Shown: positions 18,001 to 34,628 of the stretch, piece by piece
How the letters are laid out: each line of letters begins with the position of its first letter
How positions within the stretch are numbered: position 1 is the stretch's first letter
Assembly: GCF_052425735.1 (NCBI RefSeq)
Contig: NC_135764.1
Span: 31,744,001-31,808,000 of the forward strand
Reading direction: 5' to 3'
Origin: Oculina patagonica
Lineage: Eukaryota
DNA length: 64,000 nucleotides
Translations under genes and position numbers: made by a program
Notes under the pieces: generated by a model
The model's database searches: none
Seen by the model: only the letters and a program-made list of their open reading frames with translations
Told to the model about the DNA's origin: nothing

Positions 18001-19756
18001 AATAGCAACGCCTGTAAAGGTAAGAGTCTAAAGTGATTGTTGGAATGAGACTTCTATCTTTTATCATCCTACCGAGGAAAATTAGAATATTGCTTTATTC
18101 TGTCATAGGAGATATTAAATGGACAGTGACCGTAAGTATGCTGATACAGACAACCTGTTATTCGGTTCTTGTCTTGCAAGTTTTGAATAGAACGTAATTT
18201 GTTTTGATGTGACTAGAACTTGTCCACGATTGGTCACTATCGAACTAGTCAGATCGTTAATCTTTTCTGATTGATCCAACCAACCCGCACTTCTAGTTGT
18301 TTTTCAGTTGGTTATTGACCACGCGAGATGTGACGATATTGAATGACAAACTATGCAGCACGAAGATATCTAAAAAATTTCCTTGTACCTTCTGGTAATA
18401 CACGAGGGAAGGTACAAGGGAGTTTCATGTACATTGTGGTATAATACATATGCGAAGGTACATGGTAATTTCTATGTATCTTGTGGCAATAGATAAGACA
18501 AGTTCCTTGAAAATTTCTGTGTATGGTGTGACAATGAACAAGGTATATGTACATGGACTTATATGTACAAGTATCTTGTGGCAATACATAAAACTAGTTA
18601 CACGGAAATTTCCATGTACCTTGTGAAAGTAATTGAACAAGGTACATGGAAATGTCTCTGTATCTTGTGACAATACATACAACAAGGTACATGCAGATTT
18701 TCATGTATCTTTTGACAATACATAAAATAAGGTACATGGAAATATTCATGTAACTTGTGACAATGAATAAGAGGAGGTATAAGAAATTTCCACGCAACTT
18801 GTTGCAATTCTCAAGACAAGAAACGTGGGAAATTCTCTGTGCCTTTAAGCAGCACAGACGTAAAAGTACATGGAAAATGTCCATGCACCTTTTACAACTC
18901 GGGTGTACATAGTAATCTCGACCTGCTTGTATGCAGCACAGACGTCAAAGTACATGGAAAATTTCATTTACTTTTATGCAGCGCATATATAAAAGTACAT
19001 GAAAATTTCCATGTTGCATCACAGATGTGAAAATACCTAGCATTTTCGTGTACTTACTTGCAGTACGAAGGTAGACGAGAACGGAATTTTACTTGTTTCT
19101 TGACATTGTTTGGATTAAAGCCTCCTACCACGGAAAAATAGAATTAAGAATTCTATGTCATTTGCTTTTTGTTTAGGAAACTTTTACAACAAATTATCTT
19201 GTCTGAGAGACACTTTACTACAAAAAAGAGGGAGTGGTTAGTGATTATGGGAATGATTCTTTTATTGTTGATCGTTACATAATTGTCTGCTGTTTTGATA
19301 GGGTTTTGTGTTATGATGGCGCTACTGATAGAGTTTAAGTGCAATTTTCATTCCTAGGAAAAGCTCTTTGTTCCCTTAAGAAGTACAAATCGTGTCATGT
19401 ATTTTTCAAACGATGATAAGTGTACTGAGAAAAGGCCGCGGTAAGCAGATATATCGTAAATCTTTATCTAGTCATGTGAATTGCTAACGGAATCGATTTG
19501 TTCGTGTGAATGGTGAGGTTTATTTATCTTATGCTCATGCCTAGTGAAAGACCAGTCCGTTACTATTAAAGTTGTTTTACCGTTATATTTGTGCAGCCGT
19601 CGAAGTTTATCAAGGATCTTTCAAAATAACTGGTGGGAACTTCTCAACATACACTCCGGCACTGGCGGATGAAAAATCTCCTGAATATAAAGAGTTGGCT
19701 AACAAAGTTATTACAGCGGTAAGGAACTGGCTTTTGTAATAATTTTCTTTAATAAA

Positions 19757-19798
<42 letters not shown>

Positions 19799-21505
19799 TT
19801 TAATATTTATATTGCCTTTTTCTATAAAAATATTCAAAAAAGCATTATAATAATTATTATTAAAATAAAATTAAAAAAATAAAAAAAAAAAAATAAATTT
19901 AAAATAATAATATTTATAATTAAAATTTAAAAAAGAAAGAAAAAAAAAAAAAAAAAAAAAAAATAAAAAAAAAAATATAATAAAAAAATAAAAAAATAAA
20001 AATTTAGGGGGAAAAGGATGTGCCCAGGTACCTACAATAGTAAGCTCTGAAAAAAAGGGTTCGAATCTATGACCTATGAACTTCCACACATCGAACGCGC
20101 TTACCTTCAAAGTACAGAGAAACGCCTGTGTAACTAGGCTATTTTGTAAAAATTACTCTTTAAATAGCCTAAATATGTATCTTTTCACTGTACAGGTTGA
20201 CGAAGTCTACGACAAATCAGAACTGGCTTCAATTTACCAAGGATGTGAGATTCGGGAATTTAGGTACTGAGGAACACACAATCAATGTCTTTGGTTTTCA
20301 TTATATCTTAATTTTCTGTGTATTTTCTGATTAAAGAATATTGTGATTTTAAAAACTTCAGCAACGTCTGGTTGCGTTCTCTATAGTATTTCTTGTATAA
20401 CACAATGTCGCGTTTCTTGTTGAGAAATATTTTTATAAACTTAGAATTAGTCAGTGTAACCCAGCAATTAGTAAAACTGTTAACCGTAAAGCATAAAAAT
20501 ATCTCGTTTAACGACGCGACTCAATCTATTTACAGGCAAGGCAGTGTAGTTGCTGATTTTGTTGTCAATTTTCAACCAACTGGTAATGCAAGTGTGCTAC
20601 CAACAGCAGAGAAGGTTCTTAACGAAAGCGTGACTCAGCCCCAGAACACATCGAGCTTTGGAGATTTGCAAATTGATCCAGCGTCTGTTATACTAGACGG
20701 TAAGAAACTACTAGCTTAGTAGTTCATCTGATGAAACGATGCTGAAGAAATGTACAGTACATTAAATTGAAAATTTTTATCTGCCTACTTTACTGGCAAC
20801 TGTCTGCCTAATACACACATATAATATCTCTTATATCCCATAAATTATTTTGTTAGTCAGCAAAATGGTCCACGATGGAAAGGAGCATCCTGATTGGTTC
20901 CCTGAGCGGTCCAAAGTTTGCGATACGGACCGCGAAGATAAGAAAGAACTCAATGGAAAGAACTTGAACAATATTTTCCCAATATGGACTTCACGCAACT
21001 AATAAAGTCTATATTTATCACACAACAAGATCGTCCATATTCCTTCGAAGACGTTTTAACTTTCCTTTTATTGTAGATCGCGACGAATGTCAAAATGGAA
21101 GCGCCAATGACTGTGATAAAAATGCTATCTGTAACAACACTGTTGGATCATTTGAATGCTTTTGTAAGGAAGGGTTCACTGGGAATGGAAGAACATGTCA
21201 AGGTAACAATCACAACAAATTAAAAGCTAACTTTTGATTTACCTTGCAAGCAATAATTATTCTAAACAGGCATCAATGTGCTTGACTAGGGCTTCGTGTA
21301 ATGCCAGCCACGCTGGTATGCAGAGACTTTTTGCGTGAGTTGATTGGATCAACACCATCCTTTGACCTAGACGAGATTTGAAACCCATCTTCCTGTGCCA
21401 TACTGTTTGATTTTCAATTAAAAAAGGGTACAAATGTAATATATAGTAGACACAGACAGAAACAAGAAAAACGGACTGAGAAACCAAAGGAGACACAGAC
21501 AAACC

Positions 21506-21537
<32 letters not shown>

Positions 21538-24500
21538 CAACGAAGGGCGAAAATAGGAAGAACAAGGGTATGGACAGGCAGATATTTGAAAGACAGATAT
21601 CGATAGAGTAAGTTACTAACATAATTTATACAAAGTATTTCCATTCTGGATACAAATATTTTCCATCTATCCTCTGCAGTGATTTCGTCGTCCGTTGCTA
21701 TATCAAGCAGTTCACCAACCAGTCTGGCGGTAGATCAAAGTACACCCACATTGCCTTCAGCGGGGTCTGTGTTGGTTTCATCAACCGTTATGCTACCGTC
21801 GTCAATTGCTGTCTCAAGCACCAAGATTAGCAGTACACTTTTCACTGTTATGAGCCCCAGTCTGGTAATAGATAAAAGTACACCTGTATTGTCTTCAGCT
21901 AGGTCTGTGGTCGTTTCATCATCCGCAATGATTTCTTCGTCAGTTACCATATCAAGCAGTGAGATTAGCAGTTTAACATCCGTTATAAAAAGTTCCAGTC
22001 TGGCAATAGATCAAAGTACAACTGCATTGTCTTCAGCGAGGTCTCCGATGACATCATTATCGGTAGTGGTTTTGTCATCAGGTACTGTATCAAGCAGTGC
22101 GATAAGCAGTACGCGATCGACGAGAATGAGTTCCAGTTTGGGAATTAATCAGAGTACACCTGTATTGTCTTCAGCGAGGTCTGTGGTGGTTTCATCAACT
22201 GCAGCGATTTTGTCGTCAGCCGCTGTTACAAGCAGCGAGATTAGCAGTTCAGCTTCCATTGCAATGAGCCCCAGTGTAGCAGATGATAAAAGTTCACTTG
22301 CATTGTCTTCAGCGACGTCTTTGCTGATTTCATCATCAGCGGTAATTTCGTCGTCAGTTGCTGTTTCAGGCAGTGAGACTGGCAGTTCACCATCTATTGC
22401 AATGAGCTCCAGCCTAGGAGTAAACCAAAGTACGGCTGTATTGTCTTCAGAGAGGTATCTGCTGGCTTCATCCTCCGCAGTGGTGTCGACTTCAGTTGCT
22501 GTTTCAAGCAGTGCCATAACGAGTTCCGCATCGGTGAAAATAAGTTCCAGTCAGGCAAAAGATCAAAGTACATCTACATTGTCTTCGGCGAGGTCTCCGT
22601 TGGCATCATCATCGTCGGTAGTGGTTGTGTCATCAATTGCTATATCAACCACTGCGATAAGCAGTTCGCCATCGACGAGAATGAGTTCCAGTGTCGCAAA
22701 AGATCAAACTACACTTTTATTGTCTTCAGTGAGGTCTGTGGTGGGTTCGTCGTCTGTAACTGTTTTAAGCAGCAAGATTAGTAGTTCACCATCCATCACA
22801 ATAAGCCCCAGTCTGGCATCTTCATTGTCTTCAGTGAGGTCTTTGCTGGCTTCATCATCTGAAGTCGTTACGTTGTCAATCGCTGTTTCAAGCAAGAAGA
22901 TAACCAGTTTACCATCCATTGCAATGAGCCCCAGTCTAGCAGTAGATAACAGTACACTTGCATTGTCTTCCGCAACGTCTTTGCTGGTTTCATCATCTGC
23001 GGTGATTTCATCATCAGTCGCTGTTTCAAGCAGCGGGATAAGCCGTTCACCATCCATTGCAGTGAGTTCCAGCCTAAGACTAGACCCAAGTACGCCTGCA
23101 CTGTCTTCAGCGAGGTCTCTGTTGCCTTCGTCATCCGTAGTGGTTTTTTCATCAGTTGCTGTATCAAGCAGTAAGATAAGCAGTTCGCCATCAGTGAGAA
23201 TGAGTTCCAGTCAGGCAATAAATCAAAGTACACCTGCATTGTCGTCAGCCAGGTCTGTGATGGGTTCATCATCTGGAGTGATTCTGTCGTCAGTTGCTGT
23301 TTCAAGTAGGCAGATCAGCATTTCACCATCCATCGTGATGAACTCCACTTTGGCAGTAGATGAAAGTACAGCTACATTGTCTTCAGCTAGTTCTATGCTT
23401 TTATCATCATCTGCAGTGATTTCCTCGTCAGTCACCGTTTCTAGCAGGGAGATAAGCAGTTCAACATCCATAGTATTAAGTTCCAGTCTGACAACAGGTC
23501 AAAGTACGCCTCCATTGTCTTTAGCGAGGTCTTCGCTGGCTTCGTCATCCACAGTGTTTTTACCATCCGTAGTTGTATCTAGCAGTGAGATGATCAGTTC
23601 GCCATCGGTGAAAATAAGTTCCAGTGTGGCAATAGATAAAACTTCGTCAGCATTGTCTTCAGAGAGGTCTCTGCTGGTTTCTTCGTCTTCAGTGATTTCG
23701 TCGGCAGTTGCTGTTTCAAGCAGTTCACCATCTATAGTAATTAGCTCCAGTCTTGCAGTAGATGAAAGTACACGTGTATTTTCTTCAGCTACGTCTTCAT
23801 CTGTAGTGATTGCTTCGTCAGTTGCTTTATCAAGCAGGGAGATTACCAGTTCACCATCCATTTCATTAAGTTCTACTCTGGCACAAGAGGAAAGTACATC
23901 TCCGTTGTCGTCGGCGAGATCTTTGCGGACTTTATCATCCTCGGTAATTTTGTCAGCATTTCCTGTTTCAAGCAGTGTGATGAGCAGTTCACCATCGACG
24001 AGAATGAGTTCCAGTGTGCCAATGGATCAAAGTACGCTTGTATTGTCTTCAGTGAGGTCTGTGGTGGTGTTATCATCTGCGGTGATTTCGTCGTCAATCG
24101 CTGTTTCAAGCAGTGCGATTAGCAGTTCACTTCCCGTTGCAAAGAGCTCCAGCCTGGGAGTAGATCAAAGTACAACTGTATTGTCTTTAACGAGGTCTGT
24201 AGTGGTTTCATCATCTGCACTGATTTCGTCGTCAGTCGTTGTTCCCAGCCGTGCGATTAGCAGTTCACTTCCGATTGCGATGAGCTCCAGGCTGGGAGTA
24301 GATCAAAGTACACCTGCATTGTCTTTAACGAGGTCTGTGGTAGTTTCATCCTCCGCCGTGGTTTCGACTTCAACTACTGATTCAAGCAGTGTGATAACCA
24401 GTCCGTCATCATTGAAATCTGGAGTGTTTTTTTCGTCAGCTGGTGTTTCAAGAAGTAGCGAGATTAGCAGTTCACCATCCATTGTAATGAGCTCCAATCT

Positions 24501-27500
24501 GGCAATAGATCAAAGTACGCGTGCCTTGTCTTCAGTTACATCTCCGTTGGCCTCGTCACCCGCAGTGGTTTTCTCATCAGTAGCTGTATCAAGCAGTGAG
24601 ATAATCAGTTCGCCATCGGTGAGAATAGGTTCCAGTCTGGCAACAGATCAAAGTACAGCTGCGTTGCCTTCTGTGAGCTCTGTATCTGCTGTTTCTACCA
24701 GGGAGATAAGTAGTTTGCCATCTTTGGGAAGGAGCTCCAGTGTCGATTCTTTGGCGATTAGTCCTTCAAGTACGATCAGCTTGTCAGTCGTCTCGTCCTC
24801 TGTTGGTAAGTTTGCCATTATTGTTGTTGTTTTCAATGGAAAATAAAATTGTTTAGAGGAACGATATAACCATGTTACAGCCGAATTTTACTGGTTTTGT
24901 AGTTGATGAAATGTTGACCCTGCTGAAGGAATCTGACATTGAATATCTTCATTGAATATACATTTGATTTCGTTTTCTGGAAACATTTTGATGAATTTAT
25001 TTTAAATGCTTGGGACGATGACAGTATTATTATCTAAGGTCATATTTCTCTGTGTTGTGTGTCATTGATAGCTTTGATCAAAGATCTGTTCGGTATAGCC
25101 CGTCAACGTCTCACAATAAGTGTTTGTTTCAGTCGTTAACGAGTGTGCCTCCTCACCATGCCGTCCTGATCAAGATTGTGAAAACTTGGTTGGAGATCAC
25201 GTGTGTCGATGTCCTCCGGGGAAGTTTGAAAAAGAAAATAGCAACGTCTGTGAAGGTAAGTATAAAAAGGATTCTTCTATCGTCCACCGTCCTATTTAAG
25301 GAGGCTCGATGTAGTTTTTTTAGCCGAAGGGTGGTTGTTTTGAAAATTAAAATTACCTAGGAAGCCAATGTTCGATTTTTGCCAAAATACACCATAATGA
25401 TCAAATGTGACCAAATTTTAATTTTTTACCCGTCACTTAGTCACAACGGTTACCATAGCAACGATTGACGTTTTCTTTTGTTCTCAAACAAGCTTGATTT
25501 TCTCGAAATCTAGACTGACACTTGGTGTTTATTTTTTGATATGTTAAAGTTTAGTAGATTGACTACCTGTTGAAGAAATTTTAGAAAAATCTGTAAGAGC
25601 GTTTTCAAGTAAATCAAGAATGAAATTTTCAGAAAAACACCGTTTTAATATAAAATAGGCGCCTTAAAATTGTTTCGTATTATTTGAGCACAGTTTCTCT
25701 CACTGAAATATACATACTTACACCATCAAAGACCATTAACTAAAAGAGAAAGACTTTTTGCTTTAATTTGTTAAAATATATCGACTGCCGATTGTAAGAA
25801 ATTATAAGAAAATACCAAAAACTTCATTCTTGATTTACTCTAAAACGCTCTTACAGATTTTCCTAAAATTTTGAGCACAGGTAGTAAATCTACTGTACTT
25901 GAACATATCAAAAAATGAATACCAAGTGTCAGTCTGGATTTCGAGAAAATCAAGCTTGTTTGAGAACAAAAGAAAACGTCAATGGTTGCTATGGTAACCT
26001 TTGTGACAAAGTGACGTGTAAAAAATTAAAATTTGGTCATATTTGATCATTATGGTGTATTTTGGAAAAAATCGAACATTGGCTTCCTAGATAATTTTAA
26101 TTTTCAAAACAACCACCCTTCGGCTAAAAAAACTACATCGAGCCTCCTTAAAGTGTTAAAATAGAAACGGACTCCCTTGAAAGAGGCATTGTGACTACAG
26201 GCTGCTTGTGATCGAGTTATAGCGCAACTTTGCTTCCAGATGAAGCTCTTTGTCCCCTTTAGAGGTGTAAAACATGTGATGCATTTTTCATGTGTCTGAT
26301 AGGTGTATCAAGAAAGGCCATGATATTAAGCAGATATTTCATACATTTTTGGCGATTTTGTAGTTGAGTTAATCTAGCCAAGTGTATTGCTGAATCGATT
26401 TTCGTGTGAACGTGAATGTTCACTTGTTTTACGGGCATGTCCAGGGTGGGACCAAGCTCTTTATATTAAAGATATTTTACTCTTATATTTGTGCAGCCAT
26501 CGACGCGTATCAAGGATCTTTCAAAATAACTGGAGGGAACTTTTCAAAATACACTCCAGAACTGGCGGACGAGAAATCTCCCGAATACAAAGAGTTGGCT
26601 AACAAAGTCATTTCAGCGGTAAGGAAACTGGCTTGTTCAATAATTTTTGTTTTTCCCCTATAGTAGATTGCTGCTTTTCTTGGAGAGAGAGTCACTTCAT
26701 CATCATATGGTTCAGCATAAAAATTATAAAATGAAAACAAAGAAAACGCTCTTCTAGATTGAAGACCCAATGCGGTAAATGAACAGAGGAAGAATAGCAA
26801 GAACAAAAGCAAAAAAAAAATTCCGTAAAGAAAGTAGAGTCGAAAGTACAGATCCAGAGTCCCCGATAATGTTAAAGCCTTTGTTCTTCTGCACATCTAG
26901 CAAATTAGCTGCAGAGTATTCCTGGTGAGCCAATTCAGTTTATAAAATATGTAAAATTCTTCATTAAAAAACCTTTATTTTATCTTTCTCTCTGCAGGTG
27001 GACGAGGTCTACAACAAATCAGAACTGGCTTCAATTTACCAAGGGTGCGAGATTCGGGGATTTAGGTACTGAGGAACACGCTATAGATGTCTTTAGTTAC
27101 CAAAATACCATATCATCTCTGACAAAATGACATTGTGATCACCAACCTAGTATTTAGGCTCCTCTCTTGTTTCGTCAACCACACGAAGTCTGAAACTGGG
27201 GGTCTCGTTATCCGCGCGAAGTCTGCGTTGGGAGTAGGCGAGAGAACTCACTGTGAGTCCTATCCCGTGACGTCTCCGATTCGAGTAGAGTCTAGGCTTA
27301 AATGAGCCGAGAACGCCAAGGGGCCAGGCTGGTGATTGACCATATTGTACCATGGTCGGGTTGTGTCCCTTATGTTGATTGCATAATTTCGCGTTTCCGT
27401 TTACTATAATATTTTATGCTACTTAGAATAAGTCTTGTTACAGTTTAATGATCAAAGTTATAACCCACCAAGCATTTATGACTGTTTTCTGATGCACGTT

Positions 27501-30500
27501 CAAATTTCTCACTTAGCGACTCGTGATTTCATTGTTCTGTGTATTTGTGTGTCTCTCTGTGTATTTCTTCTAACTTCTCAAAGGATTTAACAGTGCCAAG
27601 AAACAAAATCCAACAAGAACAAACGGAGTAGTTGAAACTGTCCTATTACGCTCGTCATTTAAATGTAACATGACGTCACATTCTTAAATATTGACAGTTA
27701 AGGTGTGGCGTGACTCGCAGGTACTACATCACCAACAACGCATTCATTTGTGGATAATGAATAAACAAGTGCCATGTGGCTAAGTTATCTGATTCGGTTT
27801 TTCAGTGTGTTTCATTTACTAACACATTATGCATTCTTTTGTATCACAGCAATTTTTACATTTATAGACCATCAATTAATGTACGCTTTTTATATCTCTA
27901 CAGAGAAGGCAGCGTAATTGCTGATTTTGTAGTCAATTTTCAACAAACTGGCAATGCAACCGTGCTACCTACAGCGAGGAAGGTTCTTAACGAAAGCGTG
28001 TCTCAGTCCCAGAATGCATCGAGCTTTGGAGATTTGCAAGTTGATCCAGGTTCTGTTGTAATAGAAGGTAAGAGATTTTGTCTGGCGACATTGTTTTTGC
28101 TGTAAAAAGACAAAGTCGATGGTTTGAACCAAGGAGTCATATTAATAAGACTAAAACTGCAAGGGACCGCATACGATAATGCTGCTATTCGTACGGAACT
28201 TGATACAGTGTACGGGTTAATGGGCAATTTATTTGCGTTGGCTCTTTGGGCTGGCGTTATTTAGATTTGCTACACCGCGCTGATGAGTTCCAATAAGAAC
28301 GAAACAGCTGTCCGCGGTTGCAATCCTGCTCTATCGGTTTTAGTCGTGGTGGTGTCTCGCAAAGTCTACTTTTCACGTAGTACGATCAGCCTTGCAGTCT
28401 TGTTAGTCATATCAGTAGTTCGTATAGTGTGATCGTCCTGGTAAGAGTAGTTCTGAAAAGAATTAAGAGAGAGGGGAGGGACGAAAAACGATGGAGAGAC
28501 AGCACGAGCCCAAGCCACAAGAGAGATACGAGGTGGAACAGAGAGGAGGGAGGACAGCGCCCCGACGGAGTGAACAACCTGCGCAACATGGGCGAGCGAT
28601 GACGCCCGAAACGACCAGTCCCCCGCTCGTTTGAACATGGCAATTGTTGTTGGTGACTGACGTTTCAACAACCTGAGCGGAAGTCATCTTCAGGACTGAG
28701 CATGCTTAGATCCTAGCTCTCCACTGGGAGAATAGCGCCATGAAGTCATCTTATTGTTGCCAGTCGATGACGTTATAAAGTCTGGTTCGTTGAAGCTGAT
28801 TGGTCAGTTAAGCCGTGATGTTATTGAGTTCGTTTACGTCGTGAAAAAGTCGTTTGTAAGGTGCCGGTAGTTGTTGACATCTGTTGATAAGCGTCTGTTC
28901 TAAGTTTGTGTACCAGCTTTCTAGAGTCAGTCGTTGAAAATAGTTTGTACTGTAGCTTAAGCATTCAGTAGAGTCCCAGTCGATTTTGTGGTTAGTAAGT
29001 CGATTGTGTTCAGAAATGTGATTGTTGACTTCGCCTTTTCTAATCGCTCGTTTGCTTTCAGTCAGTCTCGTGTCAAGGTGACTTTAATTTATTCGCATCT
29101 TTAATCTTGTTCGCCTTCCTTTGCCACAATTATTATTTAGCAAACAAAAAACGTCAATATATCGTGTGATCAAGGTTCCTTATCTTCCTTTCGTTCTTCT
29201 AGATCGAGACGAATGCCAAGATGCCAGCACCAATGACTGTGATCAAAATGCCATCTGTAACAACACTGTTGGATCATTTGAATGCTTTTGTAAAGACGGG
29301 TTCACTGGGAATGGAAAAACATGTCAAGGTATGCCACATGCTCGGACAAATTCCAAATTGCATGTTAAGGCAAGAGAGGCTCCCGAGTTCTAAAGACAGA
29401 TTCACCAAACAACAAAATTACAGATTTTATAATAAATCTAAATTTTTTTCTTATTATTTCTCCATGTTCAGACATCGACGAATGTAAAAATTCATCACGA
29501 CACAACTGCAGCATGGCTACACCTGGGGTCACGTGTCTCAACACACCTGGAGGATTCCAGTGCACGTGCAAGGCAGGTTATTCTGGAAATGGAATCACGT
29601 GCAACGGTATATATGCTTCTTTATGTGGATGTACACGAAAACAATATATAATTTCCTTTTCAACTACGAGATGTTGACTTAATGTTAAGAAATAAATTAA
29701 CAGAGTGAAGGCCTGAGTAGTAAGAGCTTAAAGATTGTGCCGTGCGGTGACTCTTTGTTACTTCTTGTGTTTGATGAAGTCATGAGCTCTCATAAGCAGT
29801 ATTTGATTTTCTTTTGAAATTCAAATAATTAAATATTAAAAGTTTAAGCTCCAATGCTGTTTTTGTTACGTAATGTTTATCAACCTAGTATTTCCCCTCA
29901 TGCTGAAGTGACTAAAACGAGTAATTAAAATGTTAGAAAGCTTAGTTCGAGTTTTCTAAACAGAAGTTGTTCAGTATTGAAAAGTGGTGCAAGGTAACTG
30001 GGACAACAACTGAGGAATAATTTGTCGCAATATCTTTTCAATGTATTTTTTCAAGATAACGTTCTTAACGAAATTTACAATTTCTTGTTACCATAGTAAT
30101 CGATCACTGTTTGGCGGGAACACATAACTGCCACCCAAACGCCACCTGCACCTCCTTCCCAGGCCCCACGTTCAAGTGCGCGTGCAGAGAAGAAAGGAAT
30201 TACTTTGGAAATGGAACACACTGCTTTGGTAAGGTCGTATTATTTTATCTTGTTGCGCCTTTTGTTAGGAGTTACCATTATCCCTTTGTTAATTTTACTT
30301 GTCGTGCGTTAAATTTAAACAGGTCAATGTTGGGGCTGTGTTAGCTGGTAGGACATGGGGCATGCTTTGCACGTGCTTTAAACACTTTGATACATTGCTT
30401 AGTCGTCCTCTGAAAAAATATGCGAAAGGACCAAACTGTGCTTGGTAACGATAATGGCGGCGGTGAATTTTTCGTGTTTCCCTTCGAGACTGAACGCTTC

Positions 30501-30893: not shown

Positions 30894-33800
30894 GGATATT
30901 GTAAAGAGGGTCCATTTTAATCTGGCGGTTTGGCGGCTTAAGGCAATTTTAAGTGTCGGTTTGCGGGTACATTCCTTTTTATCTGGCGGTTTACAGTCAA
31001 GAAATTATGGCGGTTTCCGCGTATCACAAATGTATCACAAATGTAAAATTACTTGACAGACCTCGCTACATTTTCCCGCCTTTTTTCACATACGTCGTAT
31101 AATATTCTTTTTGGCGCGGTTACCAAGCTGAACATAGAAAAAATCCTTTTTTTTTTAAAAAAAGCCTGAAGAAAATATAAAATGAAAGTGAATTTTAAAT
31201 ATTTTACCGGAGAAGAACCCGGAAAAAAGTAAATATTTTTATTTTTTTAAAATAAAGAAAAATTAAAAAAAGGGTCCGATCTTTAGGAGAAAACGAAAAC
31301 TTTTTGCTGTCTAGGAAGAACAAATTATGGCGGTTTACGGACAGTACGTCCCCCTATAATAGACCCTCTGTAAACGTTGTCAGAACAAAACTCGTACGCA
31401 AACTGCAAGCAAAGTTAAGCAATTACAAGGAATCCTATACCAGAATTACTAGAGATGGGAAGAAGAGAAAGCTGTGATGGTCTTTTACTTTTTAATTCTG
31501 GTATTTTAATGCTCTAACGTCAAACCAATAGTTCAAGATTACATTTTTCAAATTTGAAGTTTTTTTATAACTACTGAAGTATGAAAAACACATTTTATTC
31601 AGTCTCCCAAGTTAAGTAACAAATATGTAATGACGACACTCTTGCATTCGATAGTCAAAATTTAGTTCTAAATGAACGCAGATACATAAGGTTCTTGAAA
31701 TCTTTGCAAACTCATTGAGGAGTAGATTTTAGTTAGATTAATTTCTTGCATGATCACATACTAACATTACTAATTCAACATCCTTGTGTCTGTTTTAATT
31801 CAGATGCCCAAGAGGTTACTATGGTGACAGATGTGAAGTAGGCGCAGAACCAACTGAGGCCCCTCGTGTTGGTTCAGGTAAAGCTGTTTTGTATCATCAA
31901 CATAATGCTCTACTACCGGTTTTGTTTACAAAGTTGCCGCATTACTCGCATAAGCTAAGAATTCCTTATCCAAAGCCGTATTTCTGCACCAGTCCCCACG
32001 CACGCGTGGGCTCGGGCGTTTGCTACAAACATTTTTCATAAGTAAACGTTACATTGGTGCTTTCTGGAATGTCATCTACTAAACCGAGGGAGGCTGTCCC
32101 TTGACTGAATTGCTTCAGTAATGTTCTAAACGACGTTCCGGTTTAGACGTAAAACATGCCATTTTCATTACGACATTATTTGACTGCAAGTATTTCATGT
32201 CGTTCTTCTTTTGGTTTGTTACCTTTCTTTACAGACGACGATATGATGATAATCGTTGTGGTCCTTGCCTCAGTATGTGGGACACTATTACTGGTTCTGT
32301 TGATCATTGCTATTTGCTACTGCAGAAGGAGGTAACAATATGTTATTGTATTTATAAAGTGACTATCGTGTAAACCTAAAACCTAGGTTACATTTCTCAA
32401 TTCCCTAAATTCCGTTTGATAGGAATTTGGAAAGTGGCTTTCAATCTCAATATCGTTCAAGACTCTAGCCTTGCAGTAATCACATGCGCTTTTAAGCACG
32501 ATACTAGTCAGTCCAAAATCCTAACCAACGTAACAACAGTAGACACATATATAGATCGTGTACCTGTTTTTTGGTAATAGGCGACATGAACGTCTAGATT
32601 CAGATGGAAACGCTTCTGTGAGACCTCAAAGGTATCGTCCAGTCAGAAAATCTGGCGTCGTCCATCTTGAAACAATCGACGAAGACTTCACTGTTCCAAA
32701 TAGAAGGATGAGAGCCAGGCCTCCATCTTCCGCATCATTCCGCGAGGTCACCAGGGGACTGGGGGCAGCTAACCGCGCCATGGAGCAGCTATCCCGAGTG
32801 GGTCAACAACAGTCCCAATCCACACAGGCGAGAAGACCCCGCGACAACCTGGAACCTACCTACGATAATTTGGTGTTTGACGACTTACTTGAAAATATCG
32901 TAAGTACAGAAAAAACGCGAACAGAAAAAACGCAAACTTAAAATTAATTTATTATGATAGGGGTTTGGAGCGGTTAATAAAGAGTGCGGTTGCCAAAAAT
33001 TGATTAGAATGATAGAATCAAAACCACTAAATTTTAAACTGTTAAAGTGTCTTATATTAAAGTTTAAAATATCTGTAAACTTTTACTATTTCCTCGACTT
33101 CGGATGAAGATATTCAACCCAAAAGGAGCTCACATATTGAAGAATCCTTAAAAAGGGAGGCAAAGTTATGGAGTAACGTTATCTAAATCTTACTGAATGA
33201 ATCTGTTTGTGAAGAAGATTAAGAATCCTTAACTGTTAGAGCAATTTTCGATTGAGTATCTTAAATCCATAACCGAATTTATCACCCTGGCCAATCATAA
33301 AGGACACACACAATCCAATAGACCAATCAAATCTCGAAGCAAATACATATAGCGGGCGAGAAGCGCGGGAAAACGTGCGTAAGAGTGTCATGATTGGTTT
33401 TGGTTTTACTTCTGATTGGTTGAAAAAGTGGCGCGAGTGTTTTCAACCAATCATTTAGCGTAGTAACGCAAAACCAAAATAAACGCGAATTACTTTCGAC
33501 ACTCAATTGAAAATCGATCTTGAGTGTTCTTACCCTTACCTTTTGCTCTTACTTTACTAATGTAGAAGTCTTGGGAAGACTTGAGATCAACAAGTGATAG
33601 CTAACTGTTACCTCTCAAGTAAGTAATGCTGCTGCTGCTGCTATGCTTTTAACACACCACAAAATCCCTTTAATAATAATTCTGAACTGAAGTCAACATT
33701 GTTTTGCATTCTTGATACTCAAGTCTAATCCTATAAAACGTTGCTTACAGTAATGCAGATATTCACTTTAAAGTAAACTTTTCCTAAAGCTTTAACCCAT

Positions 33801-34628
33801 TCGGCTTAACTCACAATACTAAACTATCTAACGACGATTCTGAGTACACGTGATTGTGAAAGAAAACGGTACTAAAAAGAAAGGTGAAATGATAAAAACA
33901 AGAATCAAATAACATATAATTACAATTATGAGATCAGCTGGTTTAAACCTTTAATCATGGTGTCAAATGAGTTACCTAAATCACGTGTCCTTTGCGGCTT
34001 CAATGAGTGTTAATGAGTAATGTCGAGTTAATGCAGCCTAGTCCCCACGCGTTCACGACTTGGTCAAACCTGGACCCTATTGTGAGCCATGACGAAAACC
34101 ATTCTCGTCCCCAAAGCCCTTTCGTTTCTCTTAGCCCGCTGGGCCTTAGCACGAGAAAACGAAGGGCTCTGGGGACATAGGATTTTTGAATTAATTCGAA
34201 TTTTTTTGATTGGCTGTTTGGAACAAAGAATTCCTAAACGAGAGTCAAAACGTAACGACTCTCTCATACATTCTTTTGAAACATCATGACTGCATACATG
34301 AAGACCGGAAGTCCTAGAATCTAGGACTGGAAATCCTGTGTCTTCAGAGCCCTTCGTTTTCTCGTGCCAAGGCCCAGCCGGCTAAGAGAAACAAAAGGGC
34401 TATGGGGACGTGAATGGACGTCAACAAGACAGACTCGCCCGTCCAAGACTTCGCGCGAACAATAGGACAAGAGAGAACGCCTAGGAACTAAGCTGACGTT
34501 AATATTCTTTCTTGCTTTATCTGTGTGTTTTGGTAACAATAGTTGTCTTTCATTTGCAGGAGTCGCGGACTCAGTTTAGGGCTGGTACCGAATGGTCCGC
34601 GAACAATAACTTGTACGTTGAGCGTTAA
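1..34628 (+). CDS. Giant single-pass transmembrane mucin-like protein (5' end outside the window): four modules of Ser-rich repeat / EGF / SEA / Ca-binding EGF, then 3 further EGFs, TM helix and cytoplasmic tail
   Basis: Exons with GT-AG boundaries and matching phases. Module 1: <1-1090, 1600-1710, 2747-2868, 3402-3469, 3735-3898, 4068-4193. Module 2: 4696-10862, 12156-12266, 12737-12858, 13633-13700, 14103-14266, 14527-14652. Module 3: 15123-17549, 17897-18019, 19597-19718, 20196-20263, 20536-20699, 21077-21202. Module 4: 21680-24805, 25133-25255, 26497-26618, 26998-27065, 27904-28067, 29203-29328. Terminal exons: 29472-29606, 30097-30228, 30615-30684, 31804-31877, 32235-32331 (TM: [25 protein letters not shown]), 32581-32899, 34560-34628 (stop). 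SEA motif FRxGSVV/I; Ca-EGF DRDECQ...[12 protein letters not shown]. Frameshifts occur in the first two Ser-rich exons. Confidence 0.88.
1865..2297. mobile_element. MITE with CCCAGGGG...TACTCC TIRs and 8-bp TSD
   Basis: Left end CCCAGG(G)nTACTCCGGCTTGTAAATGACGGGGATGATCGAA matches right end TTCGATCATCCCCGTCATTTACAAGCCGGAGTACCCCCCTGGG; AGGAGGAT duplicated at 1857-1864 and 2298-2305; internal CCCAAAAAAATCC repeats. Confidence 0.85.
3003..3040. repeat. (TGA)n microsatellite
   Basis: Direct reading; source of the spurious poly-His ORF on the minus strand. Confidence 0.9.
4696..10862 (+). repeat. Ser-rich coding tandem repeat exon, module 2 (~6.2 kb, roughly 45 units of ~132-138 nt)
   Basis: Recurrent GATCAAAGTACAC (DQST). 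Approximate unit [46 protein letters not shown]. Many frameshifts split the ORF track here. Confidence 0.88.
11261..11754. mobile_element. Tc1/mariner-type MITE (TA TSD)
   Basis: TA|CAATCGAAGCTCTCGTAAGCGGACAC ... GTGTCCGTTAAGAGAGCTTCGACTG|TA; internal CCGCTTACG repeats; same family as 61650-62059. Confidence 0.85.
13066..13438. mobile_element. TTAA-flanked MITE (Kolobok/piggyBac-type target site)
   Basis: TTAA|AGGGACTATGTCGCGG ... CCGTGACATAGCTCCT|TTAA; related ends near 1160 and 40897. Confidence 0.7.
15123..17549 (+). repeat. Ser-rich coding tandem repeat exon, module 3 (2427 nt, open frame)
   Basis: Uninterrupted ORF 15158-17671 spans nearly all of it; exon length divisible by 3; acceptor TTCAG|GG, donor TG|GTAAGT. 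Confidence 0.9.
18360..19055. repeat. Degenerate tandem array, ~44-45 bp period, each unit a ~32-bp palindrome
   Basis: Consensus ACAAGGTACATGGAAA-TTTCCATGTACCTTGT (self-complementary) plus ~12-nt linker GACAATACATAA; about 15 units. Confidence 0.8.
19760..19797. repeat. (TAA)n microsatellite followed by A-rich low-complexity tract to ~20005
   Basis: Direct reading. Confidence 0.85.
21680..24805 (+). repeat. Ser-rich coding tandem repeat exon, module 4 (3126 nt, open frame)
   Basis: Uninterrupted ORF 21679-24846; acceptor CTGCAG|TG, donor TG|GTAAGT; exon length divisible by 3. Confidence 0.9.
25300..26147. mobile_element. Fold-back MITE with ~330-bp TIRs and TTAA TSD (Kolobok-like)
   Basis: TTAA|GGAGGCTCGATGTAGTTTTTTTAGCCGAAGGG ... 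CCCTTCGGCTAAAAAAACTACATCGAGCCTCC|TTAA; arms stay complementary for >300 bp. Confidence 0.9.
28274..28318 (+). ncRNA. Type I minimal hammerhead ribozyme (Penelope/retrozyme-associated type)
   Basis: ACCGCG-CTGATGA-GTTC(CAATAA)GAAC-GAAA-CAGCTG-TC^CGCGGT. Complete core; stem I ACCGCG/CGCGGT, stem II GTTC/GAAC, palindromic stem III ACAGCTGT; predicted cleavage after C28312. Confidence 0.88.
28408..29080 (-). mobile_element. 5'-truncated Penelope-like retroelement (C-terminal half of the GIY-YIG endonuclease plus 3' region with a decayed hammerhead)
   Basis: Minus-strand translation of ~29080-28810: [72 protein letters not shown]. Hammerhead-like CTGAAGATGAC...GTTGAAACGTC at 28692-28659; apparent insertion at ~28465-28645. 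Confidence 0.8.
30905..31369. mobile_element. Probable MITE (AGAGGGTC termini, GGCGGTTT internal repeats), partly garbled
   Basis: AGAGGGTCCATT ... AATAGACCCTCT; repeated GGCGGTTT. Confidence 0.5.
33238..33520. mobile_element. CCAAT-rich MITE
   Basis: AGAGCAATTTTCGATTGAGT ... ACTCAATTGAAAATCGATCT; several CCAATCA and GCGCGGGAAAAC motifs; related decayed copy at ~46360-46620. Confidence 0.7.
34035..34493. mobile_element. Nested MITEs (outer AGCCTAGTCCCC...GGAACTAAGCT; inner 34099-34416)
   Basis: Inner TIRs CCATTCTCGTCCCCAAAGCCCTTT / AAAGGGCTATGGGGACGTGAATGG; outer ends are imperfect inverted repeats. Confidence 0.65.

Follow-up and report, generated by a model that had tools for sequence, protein, structure and literature searches.

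An intronic hammerhead ribozyme in a coral mucin-like gene: most probably the passenger of a truncated, non-autonomous retroelement

An intact hammerhead ribozyme in the sense strand of an intron resembles a regulatory device. Such a motif occurs within a mucin-like gene of the coral Oculina patagonica, in a 64,000-nt stretch of contig NC_135764.1 that was analyzed as a whole and is referred to here as the window (positions are those of the window unless a family unit is named). A preliminary description of this DNA proposed that co-transcriptional cleavage between the SEA and EGF exons could truncate or down-regulate the membrane-anchored mRNA. The same description linked the motif to Penelope-like elements (PLEs) and retrozymes. 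The question raised by this locus is whether the ribozyme is a switch of the host gene or a passenger of a mobile element.

The hammerhead motif and its predicted fold

Scanning the whole window against Rfam with cmscan returned one match above cut-off, Hammerhead_1 (RF00163), which scored 37.7 bits (gathering cut-off of 34 bits; E = 6.6e-6) and spanned the full model (1-45 of 45). The following features were assigned to the motif.

28274-28318, plus strand: type I hammerhead core, the RF00163 match
28264-28327, plus strand: full hammerhead, in which stem I is extended distally beyond the UAC/U internal loop
28312/28313, plus strand: self-cleavage site predicted from the Rfam alignment, directly 3′ of GUC

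The catalytic core is complete, with CUGAUGA, GAA, the A-U pair (A15.1-U16.1) and the GUC triplet, and helix I forms the open end. As the triplet occupies positions 28310-28312, cleavage is predicted between 28312 and 28313. Stem I contains 6 bp (ACCGCG/CGCGGU), stem II contains 4 bp (GUUC/GAAC) closed by the loop CAAUAA, and stem III contains 2 bp (A-U and C-G) capped by the palindromic tetraloop AGCU. Beyond the UAC/U internal loop, stem I continues as the distal helix GAUU(U)GC/GCAAUC. The HH9 model (RF02275) aligned end to end over positions 28260-28335, including this distal helix, with a score of 40.2 bits that falls below its cut-off of 52. Thus, the RF00163 match over the full model bore out the earlier report of an intact type I hammerhead with stems I-III and a cut at 28312/28313, and the stem I extension past an internal loop was recovered as well. 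The motif had also been called minimal; this term does not apply, because the extended stem I with its internal loop and loop II are those of a canonical type I hammerhead. As judged from its sequence, the motif is a canonical, extended type I hammerhead that lies outside HH9. No second hammerhead was found either in the gathering-level scan of the whole window or in a permissive scan of positions 18000-40000.

We also compared the predicted energies of the catalytic and alternative folds, all of which are secondary-structure values that leave out loop-loop and other tertiary contacts. On this scale, the lone 64-mer has a minimum free energy (MFE) fold at -18.7 kcal/mol, in which GCUG of the core is paired to the CAGC that belongs to stem III. 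The catalytic fold of the monomer lies at -12.5 kcal/mol (6.2 above the MFE) with a stem III pairing probability of ~3e-5, and the double-hammerhead dimer is at -40.9 kcal/mol, about level with the dimer MFE of -41.4 kcal/mol. These values favor an inactive monomer together with an accessible double hammerhead, which would suggest that only the dimer cleaves. However, we did not rely on this reading because invertebrate hammerheads of the same helix III type, including those of corals, cleave efficiently as monomers when a 2-bp helix III is capped by a tetraloop, and the requirement for a dimer is limited to the amphibian type with a 1-bp helix III (PMC7229834). For the same reason, the earlier statement that motifs of this kind typically cleave as dimers is not simply transferable to the window motif.

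The host gene and its intron in related corals

The exons of the host gene were searched one by one rather than as a joined protein. The SEA match scored 27.1 bits against a Pfam cut-off of 26.4, and matches to EGF_3 and EGF_CA were also above their cut-offs. The predicted layout is as follows; the three contigs named in the fifth line are described below.

19.5-21.3 kb, plus strand: SEA module and EGF exon
21679-24846, plus strand: open exon of 1055 aa with ~20 repeats of 138 nt, 37.6% Ser and 6.8% Thr
~25120-25299, plus strand: EGF exon
~26464-26631, plus strand: SEA half-exon
27899-28067, plus strand: SEA C-terminal-half exon (start approximate) with the donor AAG/GTAAGAG at 28067/28068, based on the ORF, the Pfam SEA match and conservation at 84-90% in L090, L091 and L092
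28068-29202, plus strand: intron of 1,135 nt, GT...AG, phase 1
29203-29331, plus strand: calcium-binding EGF exon (end approximate) with the acceptor TTCTAG/AT
29203-30232, plus strand: three EGF exons
32156-32335, plus strand: transmembrane (TM)-like segment, then tail

A Ser/Thr-rich tandem-repeat exon, SEA, EGF and a TM anchor, the components expected of a transmembrane mucin-like gene, are found on one strand, and by this predicted architecture the host is a Ser-rich, tandem-repeat, transmembrane mucin-like gene. The hammerhead is in the sense strand of the intron between the SEA exon and the calcium-binding EGF exon. The gene layout and the in-phase GT...AG boundaries agree with its earlier placement between the last SEA exon and the EGF/TM exons. 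Both flanking exons are phase 1, and the intron boundaries are conserved in other coral assemblies. The donor leaves one nucleotide of a codon and the acceptor supplies two, so the reading frames agree. Two nested repeats account for ~85% of this intron. An extra exon at 28340-28440, suggested by a 21-nt resemblance to the end of a mucin exon, was rejected; the segment lies inside the repeat family and the resemblance was taken as chance.

Conservation at the orthologous intron had been proposed as a check on the regulatory role, and absence of the motif from relatives was named beforehand as the mark of a neutral transposable element (TE) relic. A word search with the SEA exon identified five short proteins, and the contigs of three of these were compared with the window. 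Starting at the mucin repeats, collinearity with the window extends as far as the cytoplasmic tail in L090 (ENA ERZ25067872) and as far as the EGF exon in L092 (a TARA metagenome scaffold), whereas L091 (GCA_044670265.1) is closer to the upstream paralogous module of the window. The SEA-to-EGF intron is only ~230-370 nt in L090, L091, L092 and the paralogous intron of the window (20703-21070), with the orthologous introns at ~230-330 nt compared to 1,135 nt in the window. No match to positions 28075-29130 was found in the SEA-to-EGF intron of any of these contigs or in the paralogous intron, and none of the contigs, nor the paralogous module, contains a hammerhead at E <= 0.01. Thus, the outcome in L090 and L092 is the one that had been named as the mark of a TE relic. 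The relatives without the insert that this comparison covers are fairly distant (exons 84-90% and introns ~70-77% identical). On these alignments the insertion appears to be secondary and lineage-specific.

The dispersed family and the copy in the window

When positions 27900-28900 were searched against the genome of origin, a segment of ~205 nt (28191-28395) matched 40+ loci at 91-96% identity. Positions 28146-28193 gave separate genome matches, often in the opposite orientation. A 33-nt core of the hammerhead occurs 63 times in the genome within 2 mismatches (44 exact) across all large contigs; a reversed-pattern control gave 0. Family coordinates refer to one natural copy, L045:1807-2326, and not to a consensus. 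The family unit is 520 nt and contains one hammerhead with a strong hairpin upstream of it. Neither a tRNA-like module nor a second hammerhead was found within the 520-nt unit. Similarly, the inserts and 1.5-kb flanks of 60 loci contained no family-wide ORF of >=200 aa, only scattered unrelated reverse transcriptase (RT) fragments in the flanks.

Mapping of ~60 loci on the L045 copy revealed scattered 5′ starts, common partial tandems and frequent head-to-head arms. The L045 locus is itself a tandem, in which positions 79-520 are followed by 1-520 (1.85 units). The ends of the arms cluster at unit positions ~429-437 and ~516-520, each just past CCTTGCAG and a T-rich motif. Where two arms lie head to head, the inverted one terminates at ~520 and the direct one at ~433; thus, positions 434-520 behave as a one-sided 'tail'. 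Two alternative ends with one common motif, together with this tail, may help in the study of how such elements are copied. Starts of arms at the cleavage site (unit position 336), which could be a trace of cleavage in vivo left in the genome, were not significantly enriched, as three independent cases (L039, L050 and L040/L041) fell within 5 nt of it among ~70 arm starts, with ~1.5 expected.

Variation among the copies was used to assess the predicted structure. In 31 distinct copies the named structure was 95.3% paired, compared to 18-45% when the partners were slid. Compensatory changes in stems I and II affected 5 pairs, with 14 cells altered on both sides, a level reached by 0-1 of 500 shuffles; for instance, stem II shows U-A to C-G, and stem I shows C-G to U-A as well as G-C to A-U. 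The exact core is also present in six metagenome contigs, and several of these align over most of the unit at only 72-77% identity. In two of the six, both parts of stem I contain additional compensatory changes. As read from these sequence comparisons, selection acts on the element and not on the locus. The same data bear on the trivial explanation that the motif is a chance hammerhead-like sequence without a ribozyme origin. Although the motif is short and scores just 3.7 bits over the Rfam cut-off, its E value for the window is 6.6e-6, the motif and its flanks are repeated at least 63 times against none in the reversed control, two stems carry compensatory changes, and the core is conserved in relatives at 72-77% identity. 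The family data thus refute the chance explanation, which we regard as scarcely conceivable. In addition, the core of the window copy is identical to that of the family majority, and its ribozyme may well be catalytically competent for that reason.

The copy in the window is an insert of 262 nt (28143-28404) within an 8-bp target-site duplication, and it lies in an older repeat that we call TE2.

28115-29079: older host repeat TE2, split between 28142 and 28405, where the hammerhead insert lies
28135-28142: target-site duplication, left copy AGTCATAT
28143-28193, minus strand: inverted 'tail' arm of 51 nt, the reverse complement of unit 471-520, 95.8% to the reference L045:1807-2326
28191-28404, plus strand: direct 5′-truncated body, unit 215 to ~428, which carries the hammerhead, 93-96% to the nearest copies (L032-L034)
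28405-28412: target-site duplication, right copy AGTCATAT

The inverted tail and the body are joined via a 3-nt microhomology (GTA), and the end of the body coincides with the internal end hot spot of the family. TE2 is present in many copies genome-wide that are ~93% identical. In two uninterrupted TE2 copies (L096 and L097), the sequence left of 28138 joins directly to that from 28410, and these copies thus represent the empty insertion site. Accordingly, a short ancestral intron first received TE2 and only later the hammerhead element. The window copy shows several signs of PLE-type insertion: the inverted 51-nt tail, the truncation at unit 215, the 8-bp target-site duplication and the empty site.

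We considered the possibility that the window copy is an active retrozyme source, in which transcription of the host gene would supply a template for hammerhead-processed linear or circular element RNA. If the gene is expressed, the copy would be transcribed along with it in the sense direction; in addition, its core is intact, and coral retrozymes yield abundant circular RNAs (PMC7229834). However, excision of a unit takes two cleavage sites, and the window offers one hammerhead with 214 of 520 nt plus the 51-nt inverted tail. Moreover, the copy is ~4-7% divergent from its nearest relatives (L032-L034), whereas many other copies are 98-100% alike, which places it outside the youngest or recently active members. 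We therefore consider a role as source locus to be very improbable.

Host-gene effects and relation to known elements

Absence from the orthologous introns and nesting within TE2 point to a passenger, or TE relic. We consider it highly probable that the hammerhead resides in a truncated single-copy insertion of a protein-free, non-autonomous retroelement of the non-LTR retrozyme/PLE kind, and that it is a passenger rather than a switch of the host gene. Thousands of hammerhead-bearing retroelement copies are present in coral genomes, so placements like this one are expected by chance. The locus is thus best used as a calibration case, in which a motif with the appearance of a regulatory device is a probable passenger.

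The competing view is that cleavage 890 nt before the 3′ splice site competes with splicing, lowers the level of the membrane-anchored mucin-like mRNA and has been kept by selection. The core is indeed intact, intronic and in the sense orientation that such a role requires. However, neither the orthologous introns of L090 and L092 nor L091 nor the paralogous module contains the motif, which in the window is nested within a second lineage-specific repeat and is one among at least 63 near-identical copies with nothing that is specific to this locus. A regulatory role for the mucin mRNA, as put forward in the preliminary description, does not hold up against these findings. Moreover, the secondary-structure energies favor the inactive monomer fold by 6.2 kcal/mol, and the window contains no partner hammerhead for a dimer. 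A ribozyme-cut 3′ end carries no poly(A) tail, and a stable truncated isoform is unlikely for this reason. Published rates are relevant to both sides of the question. A related coral retrozyme hammerhead cleaves co-transcriptionally at ~0.8 per min (PMC7229834). Fast intronic ribozymes reduce the level of spliced mRNA, whereas splicing is unaffected by slow ribozymes, according to the account of Fong et al. 2009 given in PMC10919898, and the Cpeb3 intronic ribozyme tunes its host mRNA (PMC10919898). Taken together, we consider the regulatory explanation unlikely.

Selection for a host function is distinct from a physical effect on the transcript. Self-cleavage of the pre-mRNA is physically possible, and with the predicted cut 890 nt ahead of the 3′ splice site, a fast copy could cause some loss of transcripts. 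Monomeric cleavage so rapid that a substantial fraction of the nascent introns would be cut before the 3′ splice site is used seems to us distinctly improbable. If this were nevertheless true, a recent TE insertion would measurably lower expression of a membrane-anchored mucin-like gene, and the insert would amount to a naturally occurring, ribozyme-based knock-down allele that might be polymorphic. Coral surface mucus is relevant to infection and bleaching, and a copy that is both polymorphic and active would provide a natural test of the cost of an intronic ribozyme to its host gene.

Two groups of intronic ribozymes offer a comparison for the regulatory view. HH9 and HH10 are intronic hammerheads of amniotes (de la Pena and Garcia-Robles 2010, as cited in PMC10919898). 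The window motif resembles HH9 (RF02275) as an intronic, sense-strand type I hammerhead, shares its UAC bulge of stem I and has a nearly identical loop II (CCAAUAAG versus CCAAAAAG). Unlike HH9, which is single-copy and conserved at orthologous introns, the window motif is part of a multi-copy TE insert that is absent from such introns, and its score of 40.2 bits falls short of the HH9 cut-off of 52. The HDV-like ribozyme of Cpeb3 is likewise intronic, its self-cleavage can compete with splicing, and it provides the precedent for the mechanism put forward in the preliminary description; in contrast to the window motif, it belongs to a different ribozyme class with mammal-wide conservation and demonstrated effects (PMC10919898).

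The closer parallels are with mobile elements, as the protein-free dispersed family and its PLE-type insertion shapes uphold the tie to PLEs and retrozymes that had been suggested. Metazoan non-LTR retrozymes have been described from species that include the stony coral Acropora millepora (Cervera and de la Pena 2020, PMC7229834). The family resembles them in being a protein-free, low-GC repeat with one canonical type I hammerhead per unit, in its monomers and short head-to-tail tandems, in target-site duplications of >4 bp, and in a helix III of 2 bp plus tetraloop, which is the invertebrate type. It differs in the length of its unit, which is 520 nt compared to a reported 170-400 nt (220-245 nt in A. 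millepora; PMC7229834), and in lacking the long multimers of retrozymes, with ~60-100 copies and arrays that do not exceed ~2 units in the loci examined. A further difference is that the copy in the window is a single fragment instead of a tandem.

Hallmarks of PLE insertions are 5′ truncation, partial tandems known as pseudo-LTRs, an adjacent inverted 5′-truncated copy and a short tail at one end (PMC8557442), and hammerheads occur in the pseudo-LTRs (Cervera and de la Pena 2014, as cited in PMC8557442). Truncation, partial tandems, an inverted copy on the 5′ side, a one-sided tail and a hammerhead within the repeated part are likewise seen in the family. In contrast to PLEs, the family has no RT/GIY-YIG ORF, and thus would be non-autonomous, and its hammerhead is canonical with an extended stem I rather than of the minimal PLE type. 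Animal retrozymes have been argued to be non-autonomous derivatives of PLEs (bioRxiv 10.64898/2026.07.22.740005). With its 520-nt unit and low copy number, the family appears to be a well-defined example, from a coral, of Penelope-type non-autonomous elements that carry a hammerhead.

From the observed insertion shapes we infer that a PLE-type reverse transcriptase/endonuclease, supplied in trans, most likely copied the family. Copying of this type would explain the 5′ truncation, the partial tandems, the inverted arm or short tail on the 5′ side and the short target duplications. In the window, one event would have placed the 51-nt inverted tail and unit 215-428 into the older repeat that already resided within the mucin-like intron. 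The ribozyme would be maintained for processing of the element's own RNA and not that of the host gene, and the window ribozyme would be a passenger that is transcribed within the intron. Cleavage, if any, would hit intron RNA, and its cost to mRNA yield would be at most modest and unselected. We likewise infer a specific autonomous PLE partner for the family. The genome contains at least 150 GIY-YIG matches, many of them in long open frames and in head-to-head pairs.

Distribution and ends of the hammerhead family

At least 71 further type I hammerheads scored above the Rfam cut-off in the genome that contains the window, even though only 74 of approximately 69,000 first-look candidates were scored. 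Thus, hammerhead-bearing elements are very abundant in this genome. Among them was a different hammerhead family, which reached 50.8 bits and often occurred as head-to-head pairs spaced 140-900 nt apart. Beyond this genome, we found that the 33-nt hammerhead core was identical in metagenome contigs of other samples (L099-L104). Most of the 520-nt unit could be aligned in several of these contigs, yet with only 72-77% identity, and we therefore conclude that the element lineage is older and wider than this genome.

Both alternative arm ends of the hammerhead family come after a CCTTGCAG + T-rich motif (unit positions ~425-437 and ~505-520 of the natural copy L045:1807-2326). This repeated arrangement suggests a duplicated 3′-end recognition or priming site, which would account for many copies of the family appearing ‘3′-truncated’ at one spot.

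A second repeat in the hammerhead-bearing intron

Most of the intron is occupied by a second repeat family, whose window copy was compared with five other loci (L094-L098).

28115-29079 minus 28143-28412, window copy of the second repeat family
28438-28446, sense strand, donor-like CTG|GTAAGAG inside the second repeat

Canonical copies are approximately 1.1-1.3 kb long and carry the same terminal segments, inverted, at both ends (L094-L098), an architecture like that of a MITE or foldback element. Many copies, approximately 93% identical, are present across the genome. The window copy contains additional internal segments (~28463-28641 and ~28694-28753) that are absent from sister copies. The strong donor-like sequence lies 126 nt 3′ of the predicted hammerhead cleavage site and may represent a cryptic 5′ splice site.

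Host gene modules and other inverted repeats

Two paralogous SEA + EGF modules flank the 3.2-kb mucin-repeat exon (19536-21458 vs 25110-29331), and could belong either to one gene or to a gene pair. A locus from another coral assembly (L091) was more similar to the upstream module than to the downstream module.

The window also contains two other inverted repeats.

25295-25629 / 25818-26152, 335-nt inverted repeat, 93% complementary, 188-nt spacer
34099-34185 / 34331-34417, 87-nt inverted repeat, 91% complementary

The 335-nt repeat sits in the intron separating EGF and SEA exons and probably reflects the insertion of a foldback or MITE element. The 87-nt repeat is located 3′ of the tail exon of the mucin-like gene.
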